Of a DNA stretch of 64,000 bases, positions 34,601 to 56,130 are shown piece by piece. The position numbers and the translations under genes were made by a program. How positions within the stretch are numbered: position 1 is the first letter of the stretch; each line of letters begins with the position of its first letter. Origin of the DNA: Ostrea edulis (lineage: Eukaryota). Below the pieces are notes generated by a model. It was not told where the DNA came from and made no database searches. It saw only the letters and a program-made list of their open reading frames with translations. The DNA is taken from positions 80,414,001 through 80,478,000 of the forward strand of contig NC_079168.1 in assembly GCF_947568905.1 (NCBI RefSeq), written 5' to 3'.

Positions 34601-37600
34601 AGTGATTTAATTTCATGGTAGTTATGTCTCATGAATAATACATCATTGTATCCAGGTGAAAATATGGTCTCGCGAAATCAGACAAGTCACGAAACTACAT
34701 CTAACAACACATGCATGTTAAGTTAATATTTATTAGATCATTGATTTGATAAAAATCGTACTTCCATAACAGGTGGACCTAGTGGGGCAGTCAATATACG
34801 AATTTGTCCATCCTTGTGACCACGAGGACATCACAGATATTTTTCACAACACTGGACGCGACAAGAAAAAATCGGATGACCGTCATCACACTTTCTTCGT
34901 CAGAATGAAATGCACGCTGACCAACAAGGGCAAGAATGTCAATCTGAAGTCAGCAACTTATAAGGTAAGAGTCACGGTGTTCTGCAGACATTCAAAAGAC
35001 ATATATCCGGAATCAAAATAATGATAAATGTTATTTACCGCGCTCAGAAACTCTGTAGAGGAAACAGACATTTTCAATATGATTTGATTACACAATTCAC
35101 ATCAGTAGCATTTGATTACACAATTCACATCACACAATTCACATCAGTAGCATTTGATTACACAATTCACATCAGTAACATTTGATTACACAATTCACAT
35201 CAGTAACATTTGATTACACAATTCACATCACACAATTCACATCAGTAACATTTGATTACACAATTCACATCACACAATTCACATCAGTAACATTTGATTA
35301 CACAAATCACATCAGTAGCATTTGATTACACAAATCACATCAGTAGCATTTGATTACACAATTCACATCACACAATTCACATCAGTAACATTTGATTACA
35401 CAATTCACATCACACAATTCACATCAGTAGCATTTGATTACACAATTCACATCAGTAACATTTGATTACACAATTCACATCAGTAACATTTGATTACACA
35501 TCAGTAACATTTGATTACACAATTCACATCAGTAACATTTGATTACACAATTCACATCAGTAGCATTTGATTACACAATTCACATCACACAATTCACATC
35601 AGTAACATTTGATTACACATCAGTAACATTTGATCACACAATTCACATCAGTAACATTTGATTACACAATTCACATCACACTATTCACATCAGTAGCATT
35701 TGATTACACAATTCACATCAGTAACATTTGATTACACTTCAGTAACATTTGATCACACAATTCACATCAGTAACATTTGATTACACAATTCACATCACAC
35801 AATTCACATCAGTAGCATTTGATTACACAATTCACATCAGTAACATTTGATTACACATCAGTTACATTTGATTACACAATTCACATCAGTAGCATTTGAT
35901 TACACAATTCACATCAGTAACATTTGATTACACAATTCACATCACACAATTCACATCAGTAGCATTTGATTACACAATTCACATCAGTAACATTTGATTA
36001 CACATCAGTAACATTTGATTACACAATTCACATCAGTAACATTTGATTACACAATTCACATCATACAATTCACATCAGTAACATTTGATTACACAATTCA
36101 CATCAGTAACATTTGATTACACAATTCACATCAGTAACATTTGATTACACAATTCACATCACACAATTCACATCAGTAGCATTTGATTACACAATTCACA
36201 TCAGTAGCATTTGATTACACAATTCACATCACACAATTCACATCAGTAACATTTGATTACACAATTCACATCAGTAACATTTGATTACACAATTCACATC
36301 AGTAACATTTGATTACACAATTCACATCAGTAACATTTGAGCATAATGTTTTCATAATCCGTTGTCTATAGCTTCGTTAAATTTTTTATTACCAGGCTTA
36401 AGCAAGTATAAAATGATATACTGACAGCGTTTGTTTTTAATTGGTGTATCTTGCATTATGCAGTCGTTAGTGTATTTGTATTACATAGATGTTAATAAGC
36501 ATGTTAATGTTTAGTGCTGAAAATTTGCAATTTAAAAAGCACAAATTGGATGAGGCTCATTACTCAGTATAGCTCACAGTCAACAATTTGCTCAATCTTG
36601 AAATTGATGAACTGAAAACACGCAGGTCAGGATATTGTCTGAAGGAAAGCATCCCTCATAGGTCAGATCTTCCAATGACGTTTTATCATTGTCTTCTCTT
36701 GTGTCCAGGTGATCAAATTTTCGGGGAAGCTGATCAAGGACAATATCAAAAAGGAATCGGGAGGGGAGGGGACTGCCCCATATCTGTTGGTCATTGGGGA
36801 GCCCATCCCCCACCCGTCAAACATTGAGATCCCCCTCGACAGAATGACTTTCCTCAGCAGACACAACATGGACATGAGATTCACCTACTGCGATGACAGG
36901 TACGTGGATCCGCAGTTGCAAACAGAATTTCAAAGAATTTTACATGTAATGGAAGATTGATAATATCTTACAGAGTGAAACAGGGTCTTGTTTTAAAACT
37001 TGAAATCCATTCAGATTTCTCAACTATTCATTTTTCTTGTCTTTGGATTTCAAGGAAGACACAATTGTTTGAAAAAACAAGACAACTTTATAGTGTATTT
37101 TCATTTGTTCAAATGACCAAATAAATGCCAATGGTCAGTATAAACTAGTAAATGCCAATGGTCAGTATAAACTAGTAAATGCCAATGGTCAGTATAAATA
37201 TTGCACTCATTGTCCATCTGATCGCATCGCCATCTGTAAACAATTATAGTTTAATCTTCCTTACCGGAAGAGATGGGCACCCAGTTAACCACTTTTGTTA
37301 CAATTAAACCGTACCCGTTCTTACCTGCTTTTCAAGATCCAATGGGCTAATTTGGATTATCTTATATTCAAAAACAACTGAAAACTCTGTTGAAGAATCT
37401 GTGAAACTTCCTGCTTGGACATTTATTGCTACATTTGTTCGTAAATTGAAACCAATTTTTTTCAACTTTGACACACTTCAGAAGTCTGTCGTAGAGAGGA
37501 GAGAAAATGATTCTATAAAAAGTATTTCATGTGGGAAAATAAGAAAACATTTGTCTGATGAAGTAATGATGTGTTAAAACTTTTTTTTTTCTTTCAATGA

Positions 37601-40600
37601 ATTCACTAAAGGGTTTCCATTTCATAGGGTTTCCATTTGATGTAATGTTTTAAATTTGCTTTTCAGGGTGAAGGATTTGCTGGGCTATAATTGTTCTGAC
37701 CTGGTCAATAAATCTTTGTTCGACTACCATCATGCTCAGGACAGTGAGGTCATTGACCATGCCTACAAAAACTGTAAGTCCACAGGTCCTTAACTTAAGT
37801 ATATTAAAGTAATTGATTTTAAATCCACAAGTCCTTTATTTAAGTCTATAGAAGTAATTGATTGTAAATCTGTATGTCTATAACTTAAAGGGACGTGGAC
37901 ACGATTTGAGCTGAAAATTTTCAAATTTTATCTTTTGATTTTTTAATGTTTAGATTGCTTAACTAAGGTATTACTAATGATCAGCAAAAATTTGAATAAC
38001 AGTAGTCAAGGTACATGGAAGATATAGAAGTCACAAGTTCTTGTTATGTAAACTAGGCTCGTGCCATGTTTTTGTTTACATAGGTTAAATAACCTAGTAA
38101 AAGTTTCGTTTAAAGCAGATTTTTTCAATTTATAAGTGAATTCTTAACACAATTAAATATTTTCTAGTGTTTGGCACATCTCATTTTGTTTTAAACACGC
38201 TATTTTCTATTAAACAGTCTAATGTAAACAGAAACATGGCACAAGCCTTGTTTACATAACAAAGAATTCCAAGTGCTGTATCTCACAACTCAAAAACTGA
38301 TATCCAAATTTTGGTTGACCATTAGAAATACTTTAGTTAAGCATTGTAAACAATAAAAATGGAAAAATTAAATTTGAAAATTTTCAGCTCAAATCGTGTC
38401 CATGCCCCTTTAAGTCTACAGCAGTAATTGATTGTAAGTCCTCAAGTCATTGGCAGTAAGTTCAGAGGTCCTTAACTTAAGTCTATAGAAATAATTGATT
38501 TTAAGTAACTTAAAGGACACAATGCATGTTTCTAAACTTTTTCATTTTTCCAGAAAAATTAACTTTCTTTATGCCTTAAACTACTTTAAATGTGTTGTAA
38601 ATGAAATATTTTGCGTAGTTTTCGAGTTTGAAAGCGATGAAATTCAAATCTTGCGATATGCATATTATCATATGCGCCCTTGGGTTTGAAAACATCTATT
38701 AGCCATTTCATAAACAGATTAGATTTAATCGACAAAAAAACAAAACAATTATCACATTAACTGCTTGTAAATAATAATGCATTAAGATGTTTTATGCCAT
38801 GCTCGGGTGTACTAGTTGTCAGTAGAAAGGATTTAGATTGAGTATTTTTCAATTTTTCGAAGGAAGGTACGAGAAAAAAGACGTAGATAATTTTTTTGTT
38901 GGAGCAAGAACTTTACCTTAAAAAACACACCCAGTCACCTTTTCAAAAACCGCTTGGACAGAGACCCTGATAAACTGCGAGAAAATGGATATATCGAAGC
39001 TATAAGCACTGGTAGGCCTATAGCATACATTCTGTTTTGCTCTTCACATTTAATACACACTCGGATCAACTGACCTTCAGCTTGTAACAACATATATCGA
39101 CAATACAATGTAACTTCTACCAACTGGTAGATTTACAAAATAAAATTAAAGATACAAAATAATTAAACTTTTAATTATACAAATAATAAAATATTGTATT
39201 TCCTAACTTTGAATTATAAAATTATTTCCTTATTGAACTCGTAGCATCTTGAGTGCGTCAGTAGGCTATAACGCCGTGCTCCCACTTCGTACTTCCTAAA
39301 GACGTGCATATCACAATTCAAAAATAGTAATAAGATTGCTTTATCAAAATAAAATAATGTGATTAACACTTTAAATTTGAATATTTTTATTGATTTGTGT
39401 GTGTGTTGTCTTTTTCTTTCTTTCCGAAATGCACTCGTGACAATAGCTTGGCATAGGGCCTAGTTGTCAACAATTTAATGTATCATAATTTGTCTAATCC
39501 AAAAATAAATAATGATTGCACAGTTTATTTTAGAAACACAGCGCCAATTACAGATGTATATAGGAATAACATCACCAAACAGTTTGTAGACAGCGACCCA
39601 TATACACATTATTTGCTCACAATATTTCCGATTTCATACACGCTTTACTCGCTATATTTGGGTATTTACATTGTTATATGTGTGTACTGGTGGCGAACAT
39701 ATATAAAACTCAGGACAATTTGTCAACATCGATTTAAATGTTGCCCATGGTCAATAAATTAGGCCCCTAAAAGTTGAGTTTTTAATAATATCTCGCAGTA
39801 CTTTCATAATCCGAAGGGCGCATGTGACGTCACTGTACCACGTGACTACCTACCTAATTAACTAGACTTTTTGAAATCGAAGCTTAGATTTAAGTCTGTA
39901 TTGTGGTTAATTATCGCAAAATTTCGGCGAACGAACTATTAGAAATAATTACTATAAGCATAAAGAAGATGAAATGCATGTAATGTTGTATAATTTGAAA
40001 ACATTAAATGTGTCCTTTAAGTCACATTGACCATGCCAACAAAAACTGTAAGTCTACAAGTCATTGACAGTAAGTCCACAGGTCCATGACTTCAGTCTAT
40101 TGTAGTAATTGATTATGGTAAATTACTGAAATCAGAGTATTCAAAAAGTTAAGTAGTCGTAAACTAAAGATCCAGATTAACCACACACTGTTGTCAAGAC
40201 TACAAATAAATTGAAACGTTAAGGCCAAGGTAGATCTTGAAGATTCACCTTAAAAATTCAGGTAAAGCTCATGCGATGGGCCAGACTACTTGGTCAAGTT
40301 GTCTTAGGTAAAAAAAAAAAATGGAGTTAGGTGTATTCCCTAGGTTTATAAATTGTTTATAATGTGATTATACTCCGATATTTACATTTTCAATTGTTTT
40401 CTGTTGGACTGTTAATAACCTTTTGAAGTTCCAATGTGTTCATTTTCTCATACTCAAGAAACTAGAGTGATTCCTTAAATTGATATGCTTCAGATACTGC
40501 ATATGATTTTAAATTTTCTCCAAAGTGATTAGTGATATGCCCTTGAGATCAAATATTGAAGGCGAGTTTTTATTTTTCTGCCTGTCTGTCTTTAAAACTT

Positions 40601-42050: not shown

Positions 42051-45000
42051 GAGAGATTTTTTCCTGAATACATGTTTTCCAACTATGTAAATTTAATCTC
42101 CACTTCTCCTGAAGTGTAAAAGATTGTTACATGATTCATGAAGTCCAGACTCTTCCCAGATAAAACAGGCATGATTACTCCCAAATCTGTCTGCTCCAGA
42201 GCCTGATTAGAATAATACAAGCAGAATGTTTTTCATATCTTTAATACTGATAAAAAAGGAAATAAATAAAAAGTGGGGGGAATAGTGATAGAAACTTCTG
42301 GAGTTTCCATTGATGTGTTATGGGTTTTTGATGTATTTATAAATGGTTTCACTGATGAAGAAAAAATAAAATTTCATGTTTCACTGATGAAGAAAAAATT
42401 GAATTTCATTGTTTGAAATTCTGTGTACTTTAGAAGTGATAACTTTTTAAATTACCAAATCTGTAGACAAACATGAGTTCTTTAATCACACTTTGTTAAT
42501 TTTATGTCTGTTCATTTGTTTGCTTCTTTAGAAATTTGAAACAGATTTCAACTAAAGCTGTTATGAAGCATTCTCAAGAGAAGGGGAATCATAATATAGA
42601 TGAAGGGCCAAGTGCCTTTTCAAAGTGGAGATGATTAAGAAATTTTTTGGCGACAGGAGAACATAAAGGAAATTATTAAACAGGATCATAATTAATTTTA
42701 CAAGGAAAGATCCTTGTAAATGTTTCTCTGAAGGAAAACTAGCTTCTATATGTAAAACAGAAACACGTCTTGTGGTCTGGATTCAATTCTGTCCAGTAAT
42801 GGCCTTTTTTTATCCCCTTGCAATTGTTGTGAGAGGGGATGTAGTAACGGAACCATTCGAGTGTGAGTATGTGTGTGTAACACTGAGCCGGTAGACACTC
42901 TACAGGCCACATTCTTTTTGTTTGATTGATTTGATACTTCACATTTAGCTTGGTTATCAAGGGAGAAAGAATCATATTGATTTTGGGGTCAAAGATCGAG
43001 GTCACTACAGGACTTTGTAGAAAAAACTTGTAGTCACTCATTGCAAGGGAATATGCCCCGCCTTACTGAGTTTTTGATTTTCATTTTTTAGATCCAGATT
43101 ACTCAGATGATACTCAGAGTATTGTGGTGTGTGGACATTTTGTCAGATTATACTCAAACTGTTGTGGTTTGTGGATATTTTGTCAGATTATACTCAAACT
43201 GTTGTGGTTTGTGGATATTTTGTCAGATGATACTCAAGAGTGTTGTGACCTGTGGACACTTTGTCAGACTCCTAATATTATTTGTTTCCAATTTTACAGT
43301 AATTGCCAAGGGTCAAGTGATGACCAGTCAGTATCGATTCCTGGCCAAAACTGGTGGCCATGTATGGGTCATCACTCAAGGAACAGTCATCTACAACAGC
43401 CGCACCCAGAAGCCCCAGTGCATTGTGTGTGTCCATTACGTGCTTAGGTAAACAGTTGTTGTTAAAACTGTCAAATTTGGCATGTATACTGGTAGTGGTA
43501 ATATTTGTGGAAATATAACTTAGTTGTGCATTTAGGGGGAAAATACTCTTATTTTGTTTTATATGAAAGTATTTTGATGTTGATATATTTATTTTTTTTT
43601 AGTGGAATTGAAAACCCGAGCACGATCCTGTCTTTGGCCCAGCAGACGTACCAGCAACAGATTGCCATGATTCCCTTGGAGGTGAAACTCAGCACTGAGG
43701 ACGTCTTCAGACCACGACCAGAGAATGTCAAAGTGGACGAGTTTTACTTCCCGCCTGGCAGTAAGATGTGTAAGTCACATGATGTGCAAGTCACATGATG
43801 TGTATACATCACATGATGTGCAAGTCGCATGATATATATGTCAAATGATGTATATATCACTTGATGTGTATGTCACATGATTTATCAAGCCTCAGACAAA
43901 ATTGTTGAAATCTGATTGGTCAGATCTTGGTCACATGACTCCGTGAAAAAACAACGTATCATGCGAGAAAAATCCTTATTGAGCGAGTAATTTATTGTCA
44001 GGTTCGACTTGCAGCCGTGACAAAATTGGTGAAGCGATAAGTTGTATGATATAGACCCCCACATATACAGTTAGAGATCTTCGACGTGATAAATTTGTTA
44101 CACAGTTAGTTAGTGACCTGATACGGAAAAATACATGTGAAAAGAAAACTCATATTGGACTCCGCGAAAGGGTTTTCTTTTCACACCATGTATTTTTCCG
44201 TATCAGGTCACTAACTAACTAACTGTGTAACTAATAGTGCAAGTCACACAACCTTGGCATGTTGTATATATACCAATCAATACAGCTTTCATGTGATGGG
44301 ATGTTAAAACTCACTGTGAAAAATATATGAAGGCTTTGAAATATTTTTCAAAATTTTGGACCAAATCATACACAGTTTGAAAATAAGATTTTTTGATTTC
44401 GAAAATGTGTTAAAAAGAATGATATATACACATTCTAGATTATATGTAATGTTGAAGAGTAGTCTAGGATATGTTTTTCAAAGAATTTTTAACTTTTAAA
44501 CTGTAGTTCCTTTGAAGCAATTATCTGAGGTCTCCCTCCCAATGAAGAGGTTTATCAGAATTAAGAAACCCTGACAGAACCTAAAGCCCATATTACCAAC
44601 TAGATCGTGATAAATATCTAATTTTGTTTCTCTCCTAATACGTCACGGTTATTGTAAAATGTGACTACGCTGACTGGAATTTTACTACTGAGATAAAGAA
44701 GATGTTAAGTTATTCTGAATCTTATGGTAATTGTGACATTCCATTGGAGAAAGGTTTGCAGAAGAAATGAAGACTTCAGTTGTAAACTGTTAAATGACTG
44801 TTAGGCAGGACATTAACTCACATAATTATAAAGGTGAATTCTTGTGCATCTTTACATTGTTTCTATGTTTTTGCCATTGCCCACTGTTAAAATGAGGACT
44901 TAAATTTCAAAATGCAATTTGAAATAATTGTTGAATTTATCATATTATGACAATTTTTAATAGTTCGTTACGCTGTTCTAAATTTTTTCAAAGTATGTGT

Positions 45001-48000
45001 ATATTATATTTTCGCAGTGGGTTGTTACATGGAGTTAAAGATATTCATATATGACAGTTCTGTACAGTAATATTTAAGAAATAAATTTCATTTCCGAAAT
45101 TACACGATGGGTATGAACTGCAACACTTTACATCACCATACTTCATAAAGGGCGTTAAATGTTTATTTTTTATACATTTCAACTTCGTTATCTTGAAGAT
45201 CGACATCTCAAATTCCAGGAATATGTTGAAGTTGTAAGTTTAAAAACTACATTTTCTTCATGTATTCTAACCTCAATGTCTCAAAGCCTTGGATATATCT
45301 TGAAGTTTTGTCTTGGTCCCATCAAGTTTGAGATAACAACATTTGACTGTATTTACATTCTACCTTCATTTGTGTCAGAATTCCCAGCCATTAAGATAGA
45401 CGGACTATATTTAGCAAGATTCATACACACACTGTTCACAACTACATCACATTCATGAGGAAATGGCTATCATTGCAAATGGTAAAGATATCAAAGGATA
45501 AAACAAATGTAAATATACAATATTATAGATACCAATGTTATCTTTATATGGTTATGAAAACTCTTTATGTCGGTGATGTTAGCACTTGTGGATATCGCAT
45601 TCTGTTGACATGGTAACGCATCAATATTGCGTCAGTCACACAAATTTATTTAAATCTTATACTTGTTTTACAGCATCCATGAAAATTGATGAAACGGTAG
45701 ACCTGACCCACCTAGCGCCAACATCAGGCGATACCTGCGTGCCGTTAATGGAAGGTAAATATGAAATAGTTAACTAATTAGAACATCAGACGATACCTAT
45801 GTGCTGCTGATGGAAATTAAATGTCAACAGACAAATATTGAGTAATTAGGTCACTAACTAATTCCTATGCAGTACTTGTGGAAGGTAATTGTCATTTATT
45901 GGTCGGACGATGAGTAACTGCGAATTAAATTAGCAACTAATGTGAAAGGTGTTTTGAATATAAAATTTGTATAAATTGGGTCATTTGGCTATGCTTGTAT
46001 AATGTTGGAAAACAATTTTTATGCAGTGATTTTTTTTGTTTTTCAAACTACCACTCCTCCTTTTGAATTGGGAAAAATTAGCGACATTTTCCTCAAATTG
46101 GGAAAAATCATTCATAGTAAATTAAAATGGTAAAGATGCATAAAATAATCAAATAACAATTTTTTTGTTTGAGGTTTATTTCAGATCTGATTTAAAATCA
46201 TAGAATAAATCATTATTTAACATTAAATATGTATTGAAAGTCACACCTTGTATAGATATTATTTACTTTTTCTAAGAAATACTTATTGTCTAATTTCATA
46301 AAGAAAATAATAAAGTATCAATTCACCAGCATTTGTACCCATAATCTTGTAAATATTATATTAATAATCAATTAAGTTTCCAGAATGTCTCTCCTGTTTG
46401 TATTTTTTGGATTTTAGTAAAACCCTATACTGTTGGCCACTTCCTGTTATTAGCCTGACCCTACATATAATGGCGGTCAAACTAAATTGTCAACAATATC
46501 ATGGCTTAATGTGTATCTGGAAACTATATACTTTGCTGCATATCTGCTTATATGGATGCCTCTATTATTTTACATATTCTTTACAAAACCTTTTGCGTGT
46601 GCAGTGGTTTGGAGAATAAAACTGAAGAAAAAACCGTATTTACTCTTTTAAAATCAGCAATATATGGTAACCTTTTTTTAAATGGCCAAATTTCCCTAGA
46701 TTTGAAATTGGGAAAAACATCTATATATAATTGGGGAAAAAATAGCTAATTTTAGTGAGGGGAAACAGTCAAATATCGGTGGCATTTTGGCCCCCCCAAA
46801 AAAATCACTGTTATGTAATCTGTATCGATTAAGACAACAATCATATCTTCAGTATGGCAACCATTAAAACAACATGGACATATTCTATTTCACAAAGACA
46901 GTAACTGTTGTATTTCAAATAGGAAGTAGATTTTTTGAAATTCTGTGAACATTATAAGAAATTTACAGCTGGAATCTTGACAGAGTACCAAATGACAGTT
47001 TCAGTCAGTCACATCTATTATAATCAGGGCCATGCATTGAAAATGTGGAATCCCTACAGGAATCGTATTGTCTGTCCGTCCGTCTGTCTCTAATTTTTAG
47101 GTCACCTGAGTCAACTCAGGTGACTTATTGCAAGTGGTCACTGTCCAGCTTCATCTGTCATGTATAGAAATTTAATATTTTATTTTCTTCTAGATAACTA
47201 CCATTCCAATTCTTTTTAGATATGGTATAAAGCATCTTTGGGACAAGGGGGACATAAATTGTAAATTTCAGGACTTCTGCACCCCTGAAGCCTTAGGCGC
47301 CGGGCAAAAATTGACCTAAATCAAAAATCTAAATGTCAATGACACAAGTACAATGACCTTTTCTTATGGATGACTTCTCTCCCCCCCCCCCCCCCCCCCC
47401 CAATCACTCAGAGACACTCACAATATATACCATTTTGTGGGATTAACCCCACAACGACAGAACAACCCCATAAATGGTACATGTACTCAACAGTAACCTC
47501 AAAAGGTTTGCTGCCTGAAAACCGTTGCTATTCTTTTGAAGGGAATATAGGAGGTTATTTAAATAGGTTGACAGAAGGTGATACATATATTCCATCATGT
47601 CAGTGTTACCAAATTAGCTGCCACCTCCATATGTCTGACACAAATTATCTAAAAAAAAAAAATCTTTCTTACAAGGTCAATTAGGTATTCATTAGAAAAG
47701 TGGGCCTCTTGAAAAGGGACATAACTCATTTGGAGTTGTTAATTTTCAGTAAACAGGCTATTTTCTGCACAGGAGTTTCACTGTAGTGAGATCTTGAAAA
47801 ATATTAGGTGAAACATAAATCACATGTGACTGGTGGGCAATTATAACAGATGAAAACTTAATCCGAGATTCCTCTGACTCTTACCCCCGCTTTTATATTG
47901 TGACATGTGCGGGGGAGAGTCAGAGCGGACTCCATATTGCGTCTTGGAAGATAGATCCGCGAAATAAAGTTGTAAGAGGTAGGTAAAGCAGCGACACCAG

Positions 48001-51000
48001 CTGGTGTCACAGAATTTCCACTTTTCAATATGGAGTCAGAGGAATCTCGGATTAATGAAAACTAAGATTATACATCTAGTAAAAACATTTTGACCTTGCA
48101 TTTTCCATTTCCCTTTTCAGAAGATTGTGTGCGTTACTCAGGCAACATACCAATGCCTGTCCTGAAAGAAGAGCCGGATATTTTCAGCAAGAGAGTATGC
48201 TCTCAGCCGACTTATTCACCGTTGTCCAGTCCTCACGTAAGTGACATTGCCATCCCTCACTGTACATGGTGTGTGTCTTGAAACAATTAAGTGTTTTTGT
48301 TCTTGACAAGAGTGTCAAGCCCACCCCACTCCCAAATCAATGGAGTTTCTCTTTAGAATGATGAGTAATTAGTTATTACCTATTGTTAGGGACCTGTGTT
48401 GAAAATAAGGGAGCTGTATAGCAAGCACATTATCCATCCGTCCTTATGTCGGTCTGTTCATCAGTACATTTGTTGTGATGCAATAATTCAAACCATTTCC
48501 ACTGTAACGTTTTCAAATTTTGTACAGAAACACTGAAAGACTCAAATTGTCCATCAGTCAATTTTGCCTTGTGACACATTATCTTGAGCATTTTTCAACC
48601 AAAAGTTTTCACACATAAGTACCGTATAGCGTGTTTTTTCTGTGGGGGTATGATTCTAGCTTCTTTTTTTTTTAGCGGTTTGGTATCATACTGCCAAATT
48701 TTTTTAACTGCTAAATTTGCACCCAAAGATGCATGCAATCATAATATGTATCTTACATGAAAGATAACTCTGTATAGCAGTTGTTTTTATGTCATAGGTA
48801 CATGTAACACTCTTCAGCTTGGAAGGTAAATAAACTACTAGGTTTATTTTATGTTATTTGTTTCCTACGACAGTAAAACATTTTTACAGATAAGTAATTA
48901 CCCCTACATTGCCTATCTATTCTTATGGTTTGGAACTCCATGTTTGCCAACAAAATATTTTCTACTAAAATTATTTCTATACTTATTAGCTAGAAAATTG
49001 TCTTTTACACCCACAGGAAAACCCGTTATACGGTAGGTCATTAAAGAAGAAAAAACGTCCTATAGATTTTTTGGTTATGAGGTCATAAGACAGGGTTACA
49101 ACAGACCTTTTTACTTAGTTATCTTCTCTTGGATGTTTTATATTTCATATAAATGTGGTTGCCTGCAGTTGAACATGGAAATGTAGATCTGGGAAAAGAA
49201 CATATTGACTCCTTTATGTCATTCCAATCATTAATATTTACATTTCCAATGTTTTTGTTTTTGATATTATTCCCTAGAATTATAGTATGTAAACACCCCA
49301 TGATGTAGATCGTTTTCTCCAGATTTACATTGTGCTATGATATAGATTGTTTTCCCCAGGTTATTGGCAATGCCACTGACCTCAATTCAAACACAGAATC
49401 GAGTCCCTACATACATCCCATGAAAACTTGTCCCTACAAAAATGTCCAACTTGACGAGAAAAGAAGGAAAATATTAGTTTAGCAGTATACTAAAGGAGTT
49501 ATTGAACTTTTAAATGAATTTTGGCCCCCGGCCTATATCATTAGTCTGTCCAACAGATTTTAGAAAAATGTACTGAAAGAAATATTGTTACAAAAACACA
49601 AGTCCACTTTCAAAGCTTGTTCAGTTGTCTGAAAATGTCACTGTCTCATGTAATACATGTATATGATAAATATCGATTTACGTATATTATTTGTTCCACA
49701 TCTTGAAGTGCGTCATATATTTATGTAAGTCAGTCACTGTACGAGATATATGGTTCTCGGTGATAAACAGTGCAATTAATTGATTAATAGAAGATGAACA
49801 ACAGCATCCCTAGAACAATACTTTCTGATGAACCGTAGTATTTTTTTGTAATACCTTTTGTGTAATTCTCAGCTGGTATCTTTGTGTACTTATAATTAGT
49901 ATAATGGCTAAAAAATGTTGCACCGATGTACTATAAAAATCACCAAAAACTCTGTTACTAGTGAATTAGCATTTTATTTGGGTGCGGACTACAAGCACAT
50001 CTTTTATCAGTTTCAATAAAAGTTAATTTTTAACCTGATTTTTAATTAGAAATAGACTTGTGCTATTAACTAATTTCTTTACCACAAAGAAATTATGATC
50101 CCACCTTTTTTCAAAATTCTGATTAATTAAAAGTAATAAACACAAATCTTTGACTTTAGTTCATATTGTAATATTGATATGTAAAATTTCTGTTATCCAA
50201 GCTAATTAGAGAGTAACCATTGCATGAAGGCAGTCAAGATAGATAGCCCTAAATTTCTTAAAAGGGTTTGATTTGTTTAGCTATTTCCCAAAAATTGCTA
50301 ATATAGCCAAAAATTGGATCCTCTCTAAACTTCCTGTGGTATTTTGCAGTCGGTGAGCCCGGCCCCCATCAGCCCCATGGATTACACTACACCTCTAACG
50401 CCTAGTGTAGTGGATGCCATGGACAAATTTTTCTCAGCTGTGGAGACCTACCCCAGGAATGATCAGGCTGCTGCGGTATGTATTACCATGGCAACTGACA
50501 AGTGTTAATTGGTGTTTTTAATTTAGTTGATAGATAGGATTGGTGAACGGGAAATTCCAATAATTTTCCTGCCAATTGGTCTTCTAAATGTCAACTGATG
50601 AAAACACTTAATAATTAGTTGAGGTCATGTTTTGTAAGTCTGGAGTCCTTTTGGATTTTAAAGTTTGAAATGAGAAAATTTTGGCCCACAATTAATTTTA
50701 GTTCTTGAAATTTGGTTTGTTAATTGTAAAAAATGTCATTATATTGCAATATGTATGGCTTGTAAGGCCAGGGTACGTGTATATATTTTTAGACTGCAAT
50801 GTTTCTCATTCTTTCAGAAATGACAGTAAATCAGATTTTCTAGTTTTCTTGTTTTAACTTGAATACTTTTTCTAAACATGGCAGCTGTTTCACTAACCAT
50901 TGTAGATTGTAAACACATAATTAGGTGTACAAGCACTTTGACGTGCATGTATCCAAGTGTTTCATGAAACTTGTCGTAGTTGTAGCACATTTTACATTTT

Positions 51001-54000
51001 ATATCTGACCGCTTGAAACTGTTGCAGAGAATTTAGAATTGATTCTACTGTAGAAAGAAATTCTATCATTATTCTACCGCGTACAGTAATGTGTATATAC
51101 ATATGTTTTTGTTTAAATATTGTTGACAGTGTAAAATTTCACGTGTAAATTACATACTATTCACAGACTCGAAACTCAAATCAATATCTTTCAACGACTT
51201 CAAATTCATTTCTTCCCATGCATTTTTGTTTTTTGATTATTATAAATTTTTTGTTTAGGTATGTAATGTAAATATACCTCTGGCTTACTTCATACATGAT
51301 AATTATAAAGAAGATGATTTCTTATTTCAAATCACTTTTGATATTGCACCTGATGACTAGACGTCAGAGTCTTGGTTCGACAACTACCCCTCCCCCCTTC
51401 TGGACTAAATAGTTTGCCTATTCAATTTCTAACAACCCTCATATAGATAAAAATCAAACTCTAAACAAATGCCCATGTCTAAAATTAGTACTCCAAAATT
51501 CATGCTCATTTTTTTCCTAATTTTTATAAATTTTAAAGTATTTTTATTCTAATTAATGAGTTATTAGAATATCTGCTGCTTTATTTAGATTATGATTGGT
51601 TAGAGATATAATATATTTTGATTGGTCAGTTTATCTTACACTCATTTGATTTTTTCTCAATTTGTCATTGTACACATTGATATTCTGATTGGTCATTGTA
51701 TATTATATATAAGATGAGATAAGTTTTAATATTCCAATTTTGGGCCCAGAGGGCATAACAGCAAGACAGCTTATAAAGAAGGAAATTTCAAAAAAAAAAG
51801 TTCACAACATTAACTACAGATTACATGAACTACAAACTACATGTGGATGTAACATGTGGGGAAACGAGTACATACATATACATACATATATATTCATATT
51901 CTGATTGGTGATGTTCACATTGATATTCTGATTGGTGAGTGTGTGTATATTGATATATTCTGATTGGTGAGTGTGTGTATATTGATATTCTGATTGGTGA
52001 GTGTGTATATATTGATATATTCTGATTGGTGAGTGTGTGTATATTGATATTCTGATTGGTGAGTGTGTGTATATTGATATTCTGATTGGTGAGTGTGTGT
52101 ATATTGATATTCTGATTGGTCTATTGGATAGGATCTGGATATGGATATGAGGGCCCCATATATACCTATGAACAAAAAGGAGGATTTCAGTTTACTGCCA
52201 CCCACAAGCGATGCATTGTTTACCATCAACAATGACTTCAACCCTGGGTAAGGCTCTACTCGCACATGTTTACATGTTGTGATATAAAACCAGTATATGT
52301 AAACAAACATTCCCCAAACAGTAAACCAATTTTTTCATGTATCACTTCAACCCTCCTTCCCTTAAATATGAAATTTGATATAGTTTTGTCAACTGAACAG
52401 CATTTATAACAAGCTACGTGTAAGTTGTGATAAACCATTTGTTTTTCAGTCTGTTTGGAAGAACAGAGTCTGTGTTTGTACCCAAGGACAAGCTTTACCA
52501 GGACCCACCCAAGGAGGCACGAACGAGCATACGCGACATGTTAGTTGGAAGTACTGCTGTCGCTGGCATTGAACAGCCGCCTGACACATTTAACTTACAG
52601 CTCAAGCGCCCCCTGGACATGAACAGTCTGGAAAAAGGTCCGCCACCTAAGAAACATTGCACCCAGGAGTATCAGGGTATGGGAACCAGATTATTAGACA
52701 GGGAAACCTGAAATATAAAACAAAATATTGTCATAATTTTGTTGTTCAGTAAAATGTTGTTTGAAAAAGATATGATATCAAAAGTAACAGAGAGAAAGAG
52801 AGGGAGATAAAGAGCAGGACAACATTTTCAGTTTTTGATAATTGATTTAAAGATTCATGATCTTGTGTAAAAACACACATTTAGTTTGTATTTTAAAATG
52901 AATTTAATATGTTGTGAAAATATCCATGTAACCTATCTCCCATATGTATGTGTGAAGTGAAAATTTTGTATATAAAAAAATTATTTAAAAAACTCGAAAA
53001 AAAACCTACATTTATTAGATAGTGCTGATCAATAGGTAATTTCAGCTTTTCTATAACTATTGACTTGGGGTTAGACTGAGTACCTCAACCAGGCTTGGAT
53101 TTCTTGAAAAACTCTCAAACTTAAATCCAAGGTTCAACTTATTTTAAAATATGTGTGACTAGGGGGGATAACACATCATATTCTGCAGAATCCTTCCATC
53201 ACTGCTTGTGAACTATATGTCTGTGAAATTGTTGTGTTTGTATGTATGTTGTGTGTTCTTTAGAACCGCCTCAAAAACACAGCGTCCTGATGAGTCTCCT
53301 GGTCAATGGTGAGGACCTGCCCACTGGGTATTCGGTCAAGAAGCAACAAAAACATCAGGTAAATAATGAAATCATCAACAGGTAAATAATGAAATCATCT
53401 CCGGGTAAATAATGAAATCATCAACAGGTAAATAATGAAATCATCAACAGGTAAATGATAAAATCATCAACGGGTAAATAATGAAATCATCAACAGGTAA
53501 ATAATGAAATCATCAACGGGTAAATAATGAAATCATCAACGGGTAAATAATGAAATCAACACCAGGTAGATAATGAAATCAACACCAGGTAAATAATGAA
53601 ATCATCACCAGGTAAATAATGAAATCATCAATGGGTAAATAATGAAATCATCACCAGGTAAATAATGAATCATCAACAGGTGAATAATGAAATGATCTCC
53701 AGGTAAATAATGAAAGCAATCCATCAACATAAGGTACATGAATAACTCCAATTAGCAATAACAGGTACAGAAATATATCCATCTAGCAACAGTAGGTATT
53801 TAATCCAAGCTAGCAACCCCTGATAAAGAGATGAAATAGATAAGCCACCCTTCTAGCAACAATTAAACATGATCCATCCAGCAACCCCAGTTAAACAAAT
53901 GATCCATCTTCTCTAAATTTCACTTGAAGCGTGTGCACAACCGTGACAAAAGTATAAAAAATAAAGACTTTAAAGTTGGCTAGCAAAAGACAGTCATGGA

Positions 54001-55209
54001 TGAATCAGTGAAGAAATGTAGAAAAGGCTTATCTAATACGCTCAAAGACTTGCACACTACTAATACCAAGGAATATTGGAACACTAGTGTTGACTAACTA
54101 GTGTTGTTGCAACACTAGTTAAACAAATGATCCATTTAGCAACCCCAGTTAAACATGATCCATCCAGCAACACCAGGTAAATTAAATTGATTGGCAACGT
54201 AGCAGGGCTTTGTAAGCAGTCAAACTTTATTGAAACTGTGAGTTTTCAGTTGGGGGGGGGGGGGGCTACATGTTGCTTCATGAACATTTCAGGAGATCAA
54301 TGCATAAATTCGATTATGTATATCATTTCATAGTGGTCAGTCGTTTTAATGATTCGAGAAAATCTCATTAGGTAAATATCCACATATGTGCATACGGTGA
54401 GGAAATAGACTTTTTATTTTATTTTATCTCCGCTACCAAACATCAGAAATTTAATCCAGTAACTTGATGTTTTGGTACTAGGGCATTCACTTGCAACATA
54501 CTGAAAAATGATCTTCAAACCAGGCAGATATTTTTGTATCAGAAAGGAGTCGTCTTTAGCCATCACTAATTTGTATACAAGAGTTGCCCAAGTGACACAT
54601 AATTTTCGTAAGTTGTTTTTCTGAAGAGTTCCAAAATTTTCTAGTTCCGATATCTCGTATTGCACATTATTTATTATGGATGGATTTGTAGCTCTCTGGA
54701 ATTTGAATTGTTTAGTCAAACTGGCTTAAACTAATGTAAACATTAAATTTTTTGATTGGTGTTGTTTTGTCATTGTGAGGCCATATTGTCAAACCTATTC
54801 TTACACATTGATATGGTTGAGATAAATTTTTGAGCTTTTTGTGTATTCATTAAATTTGTTGTTAAGTTATTGTACAGATTACATAATGTTGTGAATTTTC
54901 TGTCATTATATCTTAACATAATTATATACCCTGAAGTTTATAATCCACTTATAATGCTTTCTGAGCCCCCAGTTTTCCAATATCTTGCAGATTTTGTGTT
55001 ACAGCTCATTCTACAGTTAACCCTTTATTCATCTTTTACAGCCCAAAGCATATTTATCAGAACTGAAGGGGAACAGTGGTGGTGGTAAAAGGCTACCACA
55101 GAATCCAGTCCTAGAAGAGGAGGAGATCCAGACTCCGGACTTGTTGCTCCAGAATCCAGATTTGTTGGCTGCTCTGGAGCTGTTTTTGCCAAATTCGGAG
55201 CTTATGTGA
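16631..55209 (+). CDS. HIF1A: Hypoxia-inducible factor alpha, 15 coding exons, 692 aa (isoform using exon 1a)
   Basis: join(16631-16653, 31285-31484, 31820-31950, 34773-34964, 36709-36899, 37667-37773, 43300-43447, 43603-43760, 45674-45754, 48121-48236, 50350-50475, 52132-52247, 52450-52676, 53264-53358, 55042-55209) = 2079 nt. All introns are GT-AG and all phases match. bHLH-PAS-PAS/PAC, LTHLAP, RAPYIP and a C-TAD-like tail are present. Confidence 0.95.
18116..19910. repeat. ~36-bp G-rich minisatellite (about 49 units) in HIF-alpha intron 1
   Basis: Unit TACTTATAGGGTGGGGCAATAGATGACACATGTAAT, with length variants and interspersed ...TAG(A/T)TTGAGGC variant units. Confidence 0.95.
20461..20477 (+). 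CDS. HIF1A: Candidate alternative first exon 1b (MMETP-G)
   Basis: Inr-like TCAGTC at 20444-20449, ATG at 20461, and a phase-2 donor GG|GTAAAA compatible with exon 2. The donor is only moderate. Confidence 0.35.
22515..22910. repeat. ~52-bp tandem repeat
   Basis: CCTGTTACAGACCTCACAAAAT at 22743, 22795 and 22847, with more decayed copies upstream. Confidence 0.85.
23210..23440. repeat. Degenerate ~42-bp tandem repeat
   Basis: ACAGATCCA...CCCTTATAAAAA recurs at 23215, 23298, 23349 and 23391. Confidence 0.8.
24577..24713 (+). CDS. HIF1A: Candidate alternative first exon 1c ([46 protein letters not shown])
   Basis: An open frame of 45 codons in a GC-richer island, with a second Met in good context (GAAATGG, 24637) and a phase-2 donor GGAAG|GTACAA compatible with exon 2. 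Confidence 0.5.
26204..26214 (+). CDS. HIF1A: Candidate alternative first exon 1d (MPY-K)
   Basis: ATGCCATACAA|GTAAGT is a consensus phase-2 donor. Inr-like TCAGTC lies at 26146-26151 and CCAAT at 26073-26077. Confidence 0.55.
28776..28856 (-). mobile_element. tRNA-derived SINE-like head fragment
   Basis: The minus strand reads ...GTTAATGTGTCGGCTGCTGATCTGTAGTTCATCCGTTCGAGTCTAGCAGGGGTTT, with a B-box GTTCGAGTC. A related copy is on + at about 56215-56265. It does not form a complete cloverleaf. Confidence 0.45.
31285..31484 (+). CDS. HIF1A: HIF-alpha exon 2 (bHLH)
   Basis: [66 protein letters not shown], bounded by atag| and |gtaagt. Confidence 0.97.
31508..31609 (+). repeat. Two extra 54-bp copies of the exon 2 3' end plus donor
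   Basis: GCTATCTACAGATTAGTAAAATCATGGAACAGTAAGTTTTCTCAGAGT at 31508 and 31562 mirrors GCTATCTAAAGATCAGCAAAATCATGGAA...A|GTAAGTTTCCTCAGAGT. Confidence 0.9.
31820..31950 (+). CDS. HIF1A: HIF-alpha exon 3 (start of PAS-A)
   Basis: [43 protein letters not shown], bounded by gcag| and |gtgaga. Confidence 0.96.
33216..34041. mobile_element. MITE-like element with multiple subterminal GACAACTCGCCC inverted repeats
   Basis: About five GACAACTC-type motifs at 33224-33308 and three inverted GGG(C/A)GAGTTGTC-type motifs at 33979-34033. It is flanked by ATGGATT on both sides (33209-33215 and 34042-34048). Confidence 0.7.
34773..34964 (+). CDS. HIF1A: HIF-alpha exon 4 (PAS-A)
   Basis: [24 protein letters not shown]...[24 protein letters not shown], bounded by acag| and |gtaaga. 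Confidence 0.97.
35082..36340. repeat. 28-bp minisatellite (about 1.26 kb) in intron 4
   Basis: Unit (A/G)CATTTGATTACACAATTCACATCAGTA, with 42-bp and 21-bp variants. Confidence 0.95.
36709..36899 (+). CDS. HIF1A: HIF-alpha exon 5 (end of PAS-A, start of PAS-B)
   Basis: VIKFSGKL...[39 protein letters not shown], bounded by ccag| and |gtacgt. Confidence 0.97.
37131..37200. repeat. Short tandem repeat, about 3 copies of TAAATGCCAATGGTCAGTATAAACTAG
   Basis: Directly visible in intron 5. Confidence 0.8.
37667..37773 (+). CDS. HIF1A: HIF-alpha exon 6 (PAS-B)
   Basis: [35 protein letters not shown], bounded by tcag| and |gtaagt. Confidence 0.96.
37889..38409. mobile_element. Kolobok-like MITE (521 bp, ~40-bp TIR, TTAA TSD)
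   Basis: TTAA|AGGGACGTGGACACGATTTGAGCTGAAAATTTTCAAATTT ... AAATTTGAAAATTTTCAGCTCAAATCGTGTCCATGCCCCT|TTAA, with 2 mismatches. Confidence 0.9.
38514..40016. mobile_element. Kolobok-like non-autonomous element (1.5 kb, imperfect ~18-bp TIR, TTAA TSD)
   Basis: TTAA|AGGACACAATGCATGTTT ... AAACATTAAATGTGTCCT|TTAA. Removing it restores the flanking intronic repeat. Confidence 0.75.
41523..41710. repeat. 62-bp tandem repeat, 3 copies
   Basis: AAGAATAAGTCAATCAGTACAGGGTACAATTTGTAC...ACTAGCAATGTACAAATAA at 41523, 41585 and 41647. Confidence 0.95.
42012..42046. repeat. (GA)n microsatellite
   Basis: Pure AG run. Confidence 0.95.
43100..43270. repeat. 40-bp tandem repeat (about 4 copies) abutting the exon 7 acceptor
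   Basis: TGTCAGA at 43141, 43181, 43221 and 43262. Confidence 0.9.
43300..43447 (+). CDS. HIF1A: HIF-alpha exon 7 (PAS-B/PAC)
   Basis: [48 protein letters not shown], bounded by acag| and |gtaaac. Confidence 0.97.
43603..43760 (+). CDS. HIF1A: HIF-alpha exon 8
   Basis: [52 protein letters not shown], bounded by ttag| and |gtaaga. Confidence 0.93.
44097..44231. other. Long inverted repeat / hairpin (~53-bp arms, 22-nt loop) in intron 8
   Basis: GTTACACAGTTAGTTAGTGACCTGATACGGAAAAATACATGTGAAAAGAAAAC pairs with 44172-44231 apart from 4-nt and 3-nt bulges. Confidence 0.9.
45674..45754 (+). CDS. HIF1A: HIF-alpha exon 9 (N-ODD, LTHLAP at 45703-45720, P399)
   Basis: [26 protein letters not shown] matches the LxxLAP prolyl-hydroxylation motif. 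Bounded by acag| and |gtaaat. Confidence 0.95.
46024..46810. mobile_element. Non-autonomous DNA transposon, 13-bp TIR, 5-bp TSD TTATG (hAT5/Transib-like geometry)
   Basis: TTATG|CAGTGATTTTTTT ... AAAAAAATCACTG|TTATG, with subterminal AATTGGGAAAAA repeats near both ends. Confidence 0.7.
47094..47330 (+). mobile_element. 5' fragment of a HINE-type element
   Basis: Starts TTTTTAGGTCACCTGAGTCAACTCAGGTGAC and is homologous to 1420-1560. Confidence 0.7.
47859..48054. mobile_element. 196-bp MITE with perfect 22-bp TIR and perfect 9-bp TSD (Mutator-like geometry)
   Basis: ATGAAAACT|TAATCCGAGATTCCTCTGACTC ... GAGTCAGAGGAATCTCGGATTA|ATGAAAACT. Confidence 0.9.
48121..48236 (+). CDS. HIF1A: HIF-alpha exon 10
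   Basis: [38 protein letters not shown]. Strong polypyrimidine acceptor and |gtaagt donor. LKEE resembles the LKxE SUMO-type motif of HIF-alpha ODDs. Confidence 0.92.
49360..49482 (+). CDS. HIF1A: Candidate alternative terminal exon ([40 protein letters not shown])
   Basis: Acceptor ttgttttccccag|G, phase 0 matching the exon 10 donor, 40 open codons to TAG, and no good donor inside. Confidence 0.4.
   Translation, partial: VIGNATDLNSNTESSPYIHPMKTCPYKNVQLDEKRRKILV
50350..50475 (+). CDS. HIF1A: HIF-alpha exon 11
   Basis: [42 protein letters not shown], phase 0-0, bounded by gcag| and |gtatgt. Confidence 0.9.
51901..52120. repeat. 30-bp tandem repeat (8 copies of CTGATTGGT) abutting the exon 12 acceptor
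   Basis: Unit GAGTGTGTGTATATTGATATTCTGATTGGT. The core occurs at 51901, 51928, 51960, 51990, 52022, 52052, 52082 and 52112. Confidence 0.95.
52132..52247 (+). CDS. HIF1A: HIF-alpha exon 12 ([15 protein letters not shown]500 at 52156-52158)
   Basis: [38 protein letters not shown] is equivalent to the human LEMLAPYIPM (P564) motif. Bounded by atag| and |gtaagg. Confidence 0.96.
52450..52676 (+). CDS. HIF1A: HIF-alpha exon 13
   Basis: [22 protein letters not shown]...[25 protein letters not shown], containing a bipartite-NLS-like KRP...PPKK. Bounded by tcag| and |gtatgg. Confidence 0.92.
53264..53358 (+). CDS. HIF1A: HIF-alpha exon 14
   Basis: [31 protein letters not shown]. The phases (1 in, 0 out) fit both neighbours. 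Bounded by ttag| and |gtaaat. Confidence 0.9.
53352..53715 (+). repeat. 23-bp tandem repeat built from the exon 14 donor (about 16 donor-like sites)
   Basis: Unit GTAAATAATGAAATCATCAACAG. GT positions run 53359, 53382, 53405 ... 53702. Confidence 0.95.
53925..54085 (+). mobile_element. Possible small LINE ORF2 linker fragment
   Basis: Translates as [29 protein letters not shown], similar to the L..L...NPK.YW segment between APE and RT in CR1/L2/RTE-type LINEs. It is short. Confidence 0.35.
55042..55209 (+). CDS. HIF1A: HIF-alpha exon 15 (C-TAD-like tail and stop)
   Basis: [58 protein letters not shown]...LLQ..DLL.ALE aligns with the HIF C-TAD. TGA at 55207-55209. Confidence 0.9.
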   Translation, partial: PKAYLSELKGNSGGGKRLPQNPVLEEEEIQTPDLLLQNPDLLAALELFLPNSELM

Positions 55210-56130
55210 CATAGATATTGTAACCATGGTAACTGGTGTTGTGGAACTTGCACAAGATAATAAAATTAAGAAACTAGTGGTTGCTATGTGACCTGCGTTA
55301 CTCTGTGAATTGTAACTAGTTGTGTCTCTTACCGCTTTTAAAAAAGTGCTATCATTTCATCTTATGACATGTAGGATCCAGAATTCTCAGGCGGGGATCC
55401 GGTGATTTTTCATATGTTATTGTTTTCATTATGTTTTTGAATATCATGTAAATGACAGATGTTTTTGAGCACAGAGGTTTATTACAGAGGAAGGAACTAG
55501 TTTGTAATATATATAAACAATAATCAATTTTTTGCGCATTTTGATACAGGGCTTGGATCCATGATAGATTATGGCGTGTGTTTGACCGTTGATAAATCAT
55601 GTTTTAAAACTGCTTGTAGATGTTGAGCTTTACAAATGGTAGATATATTTTTAAGAATGCCATTGTTTTTTCAGAAGCTGACTGCTGTCATCTTCATGGT
55701 TTTTATCTTGCTCTGACACATTCTCTGTGACAGTTAACGCACTACTAAATAAATCAAAAGCTCATATATCTATTTTATAATATATATATATATATATATA
55801 TCTTGTCGAAAGGAAAAAGATTTAAAAAAAAAAAAAAAAAACTTGTAAAAAGAATAAAAAAAATAGTTTAAAAAGTCAACCAAAAAAAAAAAAAAAAATA
55901 AAAAAAAAAAAATAAAAAAAATAGGATAGGGTATATTTTAACTGTGTAATCTTATAATGTGTCAGCATGGGTGTGTTTGTTTATGTTGTAGTGCTTAACT
56001 GTTATATGCAAATGCTGCCATCGTATGTTACTTATCATGTTTTATGGTTGAAATTTTGTCAGATGAAATCCTGATTTGTTTTGCCCTATGCAGGTACTTG
56101 TAATGAGCAAATAAACAAATTCATTGTAAT
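55210..56130 (+). other. Probable HIF-alpha 3' UTR with candidate polyadenylation signals
   Basis: An AU-rich stretch after the stop, with AATAAA at 55853 (inside an A-tract) and 56110. The true end cannot be fixed from sequence. Confidence 0.4.

Follow-up and report, generated by a model that had tools for sequence, protein, structure and literature searches.

Loss of the FIH-target asparagine from the C-terminal tail of Ostrea edulis HIF-alpha, a trait common to oysters

The C-TAD of human HIF-1alpha (residues 786-826) is an FIH substrate at Asn803. Hampton-Smith et al. (2019; PMC6488082) described FIH-positive bivalves, C. gigas among them, with a CAD-like tail lacking the FIH motif, a class in which helix alphaC is conserved, alphaB is divergent and the target Asn is absent. 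The C. gigas FIH homologue (GECI01020989.1) matches human FIH with 91% coverage and 58% identity (PMC6488082), and full-length CgHIFalpha activates an HRE reporter in HEK293T cells (PMC5096685). FIH accepts Asp and His besides Asn (PMC3045019, PMC3569879), and neither of these two papers mentions Gln or Glu as an acceptor. Independent losses of the FIH site or of the C-TAD are known from the CAD-like tails of Hymenoptera (Apocrita) and Lepidoptera and from the C-TAD-less HIF-alpha of Drosophila and C. elegans; those insects have also lost FIH, whereas oysters are reported to keep it (PMC6488082). Oyster FIH is presumably retained for ankyrin-repeat substrates.

The window analysed here, a 64 kb stretch of O. 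edulis DNA, contains the orthologue of C. gigas HIF-alpha (NP_001292266.1, ‘green class’ CAD-like in PMC6488082), with 86% identity overall and the same exon structure. All exons align within the window when oyster HIF-1alpha proteins are used as tblastn queries (table 1). The spliced product is 100% identical to O. edulis XP_048735208.2, annotated “HIF-1-alpha-like”, and 86-88% identical to the HIF-1alpha proteins of Magallana, Crassostrea, and Saccostrea. It has the bHLH and PAS-A/PAS-B/PAC architecture of HIF-alpha (class I bHLH-PAS), and the protein cluster of the gene carries Pfam PF00010, PF00989, PF08447, PF14598, and PF11413. RNA contigs show GT..AG joints that lead into the last four exons and connect them. 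A pseudogene or assembly artefact is ruled out, the gene being intact, RNA-supported and identical to the RefSeq model.

Table 1. Coding features of the O. edulis HIF-alpha gene; positions are those of the window.
Feature	Position	Strand	Evidence
Exon 2 (bHLH), phase-2 acceptor; first coding exon upstream	31285..31484	+	tblastn with oyster HIF-alpha proteins, splice model
Exon 3 (PAS-A start)	31820..31950	+	tblastn, splice model
Exon 4 (PAS-A)	34773..34964	+	tblastn, splice model
Exon 5 (PAS-A/PAS-B junction)	36709..36899	+	splice model
Exon 6 (PAS-B)	37667..37773	+	tblastn, splice model
Exon 7 (PAS-B/PAC)	43300..43447	+	tblastn, splice model
Exon 8	43603..43769	+	tblastn, splice model
Exon 9, N-terminal ODD site LTHLAP, Pro codon 45718-45720	45674..45754	+	tblastn
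Exon 10	48121..48236	+	tblastn, splice model
Exon 11	50350..50475	+	tblastn; RNA joint 50475/52132
Exon 12, C-terminal ODD site, Pro codon 52156-52158	52132..52247	+	RNA joints; Pfam PF11413
Exon 13	52450..52676	+	RNA joints 52247/52450, 52676/53264
Exon 14 (95 nt), alphaA-like motif	53264..53358	+	RNA joints; 95% invariant among five oysters
Last exon: linker, degenerate stretch with alphaB and the FIH site, conserved alphaC-like tail, stop	55042..55209	+	RNA joint 53358/55042, translation
CAG = Gln, alignment column of human Asn803 (Q670 of XP_048735208.2)	55129..55131	+	MAFFT alignment
Last 25 residues: bridge + alphaC equivalent + Ostreida-type C-terminal extension	55132..55206	+	92% invariant among five oysters; hhalign

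The residue numbers of the initial annotation (Q667, P399, P500, N658, and N675) agree with a gene model built here whose first exon codes for four residues; in XP_048735208.2 these are Q670, P402, P503, N661, and N678, the numbering used below. Its reading that both PHD prolines are intact agrees with the sequence, in which a putative NODD (LTHLAP, with P402) and a putative CODD (MRAPYIPM, with P503) are both present. The CODD exon matches Pfam PF11413 at 30 bits (cut-off 27). An unusual CODD is ruled out, RAPYIPM being the mollusc norm, common to all sampled molluscs and to the brachiopod Lingula.

The last exon begins directly after an AG at 55040-41, and translation of 55090-55209 on the forward strand gives a 39-residue C-terminal tail closed by a TGA stop at 55207-55209. 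An unsupervised MAFFT alignment of 22 tails places E-I-Q-T-P on E-V-N-A-P, with Gln in the Asn803 column and Glu in place of the FIH-adjacent Cys of the human tail. The initial annotation had claimed the Gln and the loss of the Cys. Its register, with Gln on Asn803, therefore appears to be no product of chance anchoring, and it holds in this wider comparison of C-TADs across bivalves and other molluscs. The oyster tail departs from the target-Asn motif [D/E]-V-N-(A/V)-P and also from L-x5-[D/E]-V-N, which has Leu at -8: the residues upstream of Q670 are I, E, E, E, E, L, V, and P, so that Pro stands at -8 and Leu at -6. The other two Asn codons of the tail lie at 55102-55104 (N661) and 55153-55155 (N678).

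Like the human C-TAD, the tail lies at the extreme C-terminus and has the same order of elements: an alphaA-like motif, an LP motif, an acidic stretch, hydrophobic-X-T/A-P, an LLQ bridge and an LLxALD/E helix. Relative to human, Asn803 is replaced by Gln, Cys800 by Glu, Leu795 by Asn and the -8 residue by Pro; the alphaB-alphaC bridge has a deletion of 4-6 residues, the C-terminus is extended by seven residues and the linker from alphaA to the LP motif is longer. The C. gigas orthologue shares the near-identical last 25 residues, the missing Asn in the N803 column, the missing -8 Leu and a fast-evolving alphaB, and differs in a one-residue length change in the alphaB-like stretch and in carrying Glu, as do Magallana, Crassostrea, and Saccostrea, where O. 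edulis has Gln (CAG).

Homology of the tail to HIF C-TADs, as proposed in the initial annotation, is borne out by the MAFFT alignment, in which the alphaC/bridge columns are invariant or nearly so. The Pfam model PF08778 HIF-1a_CTAD (gathering threshold 25 bits) gave no match at E up to 10 for the O. edulis last exon or for the Saccostrea, Magallana, and Mytilus tails, whereas scallops pass (Pecten, 48 bits) and Pinctada scores below threshold (13 bits). A profile built from 116 canonical tails reached only 6.8 bits on the O. edulis tail, which it did not detect, and phmmer found no match to the last exon among all PDB chains because the tail is too divergent from the HIF C-TAD chains. As both the Pfam model and the 116-tail profile miss the tail, homology was shown through a Pinctada intermediate and a profile-profile comparison. 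With hhalign, the oyster-tail profile aligned to a profile of 19 canonical tails with an E-value of 0.0014 over 16 columns, confined to the alphaC/bridge and including the C-terminal motif LLQGxxLLxALD (aligned as LLQGxDLLxALD). The tail of Pinctada imbricata, a pearl oyster of the same order, reads EIEANTS...LLLQGADL...LIPRSSLM and is intermediate between oyster and canonical tails; it shares the ending LLLQ..DL...LE..IP.S.LM with oysters, and scallops have the alphaA motif and the general order of elements in common with them. Both keep the Asn that O. edulis lacks (EIEAN in Pinctada, DCEVNAP in scallops). The placing of Q on N803 lies outside the significant hhalign block, and is based on the global alignment, the spacing, the nearly invariant Pro at +2 from the target column and the Pinctada intermediate.

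Taken as a whole, the O. edulis tail has the features of the CAD-like class of PMC6488082, and we consider it very probable that the HIF-alpha gene of O. edulis normally ends in this exon, whose alphaC-like part has been kept and whose FIH-site part has drifted. Among five oysters the invariant fraction is 0.14 in the alphaB-like region and 0.19 in the linker, against 0.92 in the last 25 residues and 0.77 in the whole protein. The equivalent of helix alphaC and the bridge would thus be under strong constraint, and the equivalents of helix alphaB, the LPQL motif, and the FIH motif L-x5-[D/E]-V-N would have drifted. FIH would be unable to switch such a tail off, oxygen control of the protein would act via PHD/VHL-dependent stability only, and any binding of the tail to CBP/p300 TAZ1 would be constitutive, with the alphaC-like helix contributing most of it.

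It is possible, though doubtful, that the tail no longer binds CBP/p300 at all, its 25 C-terminal residues, including the Ostreida-specific LFLPNSELM, being kept for another partner or function while transactivation proceeds via the N-TAD/ODD. Of the four N-terminal positions that contact TAZ1, three are changed (the equivalents of L795, C800, and N803), but those of L812/L813, L818/L819, and L822 are all present. Failure of the Pfam CTAD model to recognise the oyster tail points the same way, against which stands the significant hhalign similarity of the alphaC block to canonical C-TADs. Oysters conserve the C-terminal extension past ALE, Pinctada and mussels do so loosely, and for two other oysters RefSeq predicts isoforms that lack the tail; the CBP-binding capacity predicted for CAD-like tails of this kind was, however, rated moderate by Hampton-Smith et al. 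(2019; PMC6488082). A bolder proposal, and an improbable one, is that the tail is a re-engineered module in which the invariant Asn-Pro of LLLQNPDLL and the LFLPNSELM end make up a novel interface under regulation, such as a hydroxylation site of oyster FIH that has moved or a docking surface for some other partner. In that case the tail would still be gated by oxygen or some other signal, though in a way not observed in vertebrates.

We regard as highly improbable a regulation of the tail by an oyster FIH of altered specificity acting at N678 (LLLQNPDLL), N661 (LPQN), or the Gln itself. Oysters do keep FIH, on the evidence of the C. gigas homologue (PMC6488082), the enzyme is promiscuous towards Asn, Asp, and His (PMC3045019, PMC3569879) and beetle and human FIH differ in substrate preference (PMC6488082). 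N678 is moreover invariant in the five oysters at a position where canonical tails have Gly. Both Asn residues nevertheless lie outside an L-x5-[D/E]-V-N context, N678 having Gln at -1, Leu at -2, Gln/Glu at -8, and Pro at +1, and N661 is not conserved (M in Magallana, L or a gap in Crassostrea). The Gln itself is replaced by Glu in other oyster genera.

That an alternative last exon or a second HIF-alpha gene supplies an FIH-sensitive C-TAD, so that the pathway is not really uncoupled, is scarcely credible: some gastropods (Babylonia, Nucella) have two HIF-alpha genes and oysters have a HIFalpha-like paralogue, but this CgHIFalpha-like protein reportedly lacks the conserved Asn (PMC5096685), every named oyster isoform has either the same tail or a frameshifted tail-less end, RNA joints run into the last exon at 55042-55209, and the 116-tail profile and a motif scan found no canonical C-TAD, and hence none of the CEVNAP exons that the initial annotation had named as grounds for refutation, in any of the six frames of the window, including 8.8 kb downstream of the stop.

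With the FIH-target Asn absent, no alternative CEVNAP exon in the window and transcripts that use the last exon, lost FIH control is the natural reading of the O. edulis tail, and the same conclusion was reached for C. gigas by Hampton-Smith et al. (2019; PMC6488082). To this extent the suggestion of the initial annotation that transactivation may be uncoupled from FIH stands, as judged from the altered site, although the adaptive gloss attached to it does not. Absence of the FIH Asn characterises the oyster family as a whole and was already on record for the Pacific oyster; it is real but ordinary. O. edulis adds one more oyster genus to the published pattern of FIH-positive bivalves with a tail apparently unfit as an FIH substrate, a pattern that supports HIF-independent roles of FIH and an oxygen control of HIF in such animals resting on PHD/VHL alone.

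Among the molluscs compared, Asn is kept in the pearl oyster, scallops, Solemya, venerid and myid clams, gastropods, and chitons, and lost in all sampled true oysters, mussels, freshwater unionids, and a razor clam. The database model of Tegillarca has a junk sequence at its C-terminus. Bivalves have lost the residue independently at least four times, and the oyster loss postdates the split from pearl oysters. Ostrea edulis is mainly sublittoral. This, together with the loss being common to all sampled oysters, speaks against the initial annotation's view of an adaptation to intertidal hypoxia, as does the distribution of Asn: it is retained in intertidal limpets (Patella), periwinkles (Littorina), and chitons and in the hypoxia-tolerant Mya and Mercenaria, and freshwater unionids have lost it. 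Loss of Asn thus does not track intertidal life. The comparison gives a finer map than the “some mussels and oysters” of PMC6488082, with separate losses in oysters, mussels, unionids, and a razor clam. Within oysters, Magallana, Crassostrea, and Saccostrea read VIETP or VMETP with Glu in the Asn803 column, and Gln accordingly appears to be no special amide-preserving replacement; its presence in Ostrea, as against Glu in the other oysters, is the sole new detail.

The HIF-α gene of Ostrea edulis encodes an FIH site lacking the target Asn, the neighboring Cys, and the −8 Leu, while its PHD sites are intact, its αC-like helix is conserved, and the exon concerned is transcribed. This bHLH-PAS gene occupies ~31.3 to 55.2 kb of the window in at least 15 coding exons, of which 14 were placed by tblastn searches with oyster proteins, their edges set at GT/AG sites. 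The best match to exon 5 in the library search was a 697-aa Magallana gigas HIF-1α, and the same cluster includes O. edulis XP_048735208.2 (695 aa), the existing RefSeq annotation of this gene. From exon 2 onward the splice model yields 688 aa, matching this entry at 100% identity and the orthologues of Magallana, Crassostrea, and Saccostrea at 86–88%. Immediately after the exon 2 donor (31485–31609), the frame remains open across about three copies of a tandem ~54-nt unit (16 residues), each of which could hold a copy of the donor; the donor backed by orthologues is the first, 31484.

The initial annotation placed Gln in the FIH-target Asn column, with the adjacent Cys replaced and both PHD prolines kept, and all three points hold, as does the position it gave for the CAG codon. 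By the residue count of the RefSeq protein, this Gln becomes Q670, with P402 in LTHLAP and P503 in MRAPYIPM as the two PHD prolines. Arg at CODD position −2 was considered as an oddity and rejected, the motif being RAPYIPM or RAPFIPM in every sampled mollusc and Lingula.

Contigs from two RNA-like runs, apparently of the same or a closely related oyster, were mapped to 50200–55700; they contain GT..AG joints at 50475/52132, 52247/52450, 52676/53264, and 53358/55042, and also span the terminal exon with the 3′ UTR. The joined exons form a single open frame through the CODD (13 residues), the αA-like motif (18 residues), and the tail, with 55090–55209 (+) translating to 39 residues followed by TGA. 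Isoform X3 of Magallana angulata (626 aa) and isoform X4 of Crassostrea virginica (624 aa), both RefSeq predictions without the tail, skip the equivalent of exon 14 (95 nt, 53264–53358), shifting the last-exon frame to a product ending in WW*. An equivalent skip in the window (into 55042–55089) would give an 18-residue end, and the conserved stop in this frame is accounted for by GGK codons that the main frame conserves. The corresponding joint (52676/55042) is absent among the RNA joints listed.

Features of the last exon and tail, with the fraction of invariant alignment columns among five oysters
Feature	Position	Strand	Evidence	Invariant fraction
Last coding exon	start 55042, AG acceptor 55040-41	+	translation, RNA joints	
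Gln codon CAG	55129-55131	+	translation	
αA-like motif				0.95
Linker				0.19
αB-like stretch ending at Gln/Glu				0.14
Last 25 residues				0.92

MAFFT alignment of 22 C-terminal pieces (four oysters, Pinctada, two scallops, Solemya, five heterodont clams, three gastropods, two chitons, an aplacophoran, an annelid, and two vertebrates) set E-E-E-I-Q-T-P on D-C-E-V-N-A-P, with the LP motif, Pro at +2, LLQ bridge, and LLxAL helix as common columns. In Magallana and Saccostrea the corresponding segment is V-I-E-T-P and in Crassostrea V-M-E-T-P; Glu occupies the Asn803 column in these three genera and Gln in Ostrea, and the most parsimonious history is a GAG codon turning into CAG along the Ostrea lineage. 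Pinctada, of the same order, differs in retaining E-I-E-A-N together with an oyster-type end (LLLQGADL...LIPRSSLM), and so links the tail of oysters with the canonical form. Profile–profile comparison of oyster tails with 19 canonical tails was significant only over 15 residues against LLQGxDLLxALD (E 0.0014); the Pfam HIF-1a_CTAD model scored 13 bits on Pinctada and 48 bits on Pecten and had no match on oyster tails. The register placing Gln on Asn803, supported by the global alignment, by spacing, and by Pinctada as an intermediate and carrying no significance score of its own, was judged sound.

Over the whole protein, 77% of columns are invariant in the five-oyster comparison (O. edulis, two Saccostrea species, M. 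gigas, and C. virginica); the former FIH-recognition region is the protein's least constrained part and the αC-like end among the most constrained. This pattern fits a tail that lost FIH recognition and kept its binding helix. Pteriomorph tails (P0153, P0172, P0024, P0174, and P0177, compared with 55183–55206) share a loose extension after the αC helix, reading LFLPNSELM in oysters, LIPRSSLM in Pinctada, and M(M/L)TPDVS(M/L) in mussels, whereas vertebrates have no such extension.

The motif L-x5-[D/E]-V-N-A-P is retained in chitons, the aplacophoran, all sampled gastropods, the protobranch Solemya, and four scallops. Mercenaria, Mya, and Dreissena have the [D/E]-V-N-A-P core with the −8 Leu missing, and Mactra and Pinctada have the Asn with the −1 residue altered. 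The Asn is missing in true oysters, Mytilus and related unnamed sequences, two unionids, and Sinonovacula (Ser there), which on the accepted bivalve tree implies at least four independent losses. The molecular core of the initial interpretation stands; its proposal of adaptation to intertidal, hypoxia-tolerant life does not, as the losses do not track such habits and intertidal Patella and Littorina keep the Asn. A Tegillarca granosa HIF-1α model (P0187, 641 aa) ends in low-complexity Y/I/F-rich junk with no HIF tail, probably a gene-model error, and Arcida were therefore left out of the scoring.

From established FIH, HIF-1α, and CBP structures and Hampton-Smith et al. (2019; PMC6488082), we infer that FIH would be unable to hydroxylate the tail, leaving PHD/VHL-dependent turnover as the only route of oxygen control over the protein. 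The tail probably still contacts CBP/p300 TAZ1 through equivalents of L812/L813, L818/L819, and L822; this binding is predicted to be constitutive, and weaker or different at the LPQL/αB face. There is perhaps one chance in four that the tail instead serves another partner, and hydroxylation of another tail residue seems very improbable. Least credible of all is a canonical C-TAD supplied from elsewhere, such as a different last exon with CEVNAP, as the RNA joints lead into the 55042 exon and a profile built on 116 canonical C-TADs, with a motif scan, recovered no other candidate in all six frames of the window.

The missing Asn in Ostrea correctly repeats, for a further oyster genus, what was already described for C. 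gigas (PMC6488082). Hampton-Smith et al. reported CAD-like tails with no FIH motif in FIH-positive bivalves such as C. gigas and read them as a hint of other FIH roles; the S1 Table of that paper includes HIF NP_001292266.1 of C. gigas, also a member of the cluster retrieved here, a C. gigas FIH homologue (GECI01020989.1, 91% coverage, 58% identity), and further FIH homologues from Mytilus and Elliptio, a unionid. In C. gigas the conserved Asn is reported to be missing from a HIFα-like paralogue as well, and CgHIFα activates an HRE reporter (PMC5096685).

Intronic segments 51672–51855 and 54432–54799 reach summed contig depths of ~10,000 and 1,700–2,900 in DNA run X4 (background ~6), with many partial joints and loose ends, and are therefore high-copy repeats or transposon fragments; the former adjoins a tandem array at ~51.8–52.3 kb. 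Long open frames at 18157–20030 (− frames) and 34964–35462 (+ frames, intron 4), built of short tandem units (a 12-letter unit and ITQFTSV.FDYTIH), were rejected as HIF exons and are minisatellite-like arrays.
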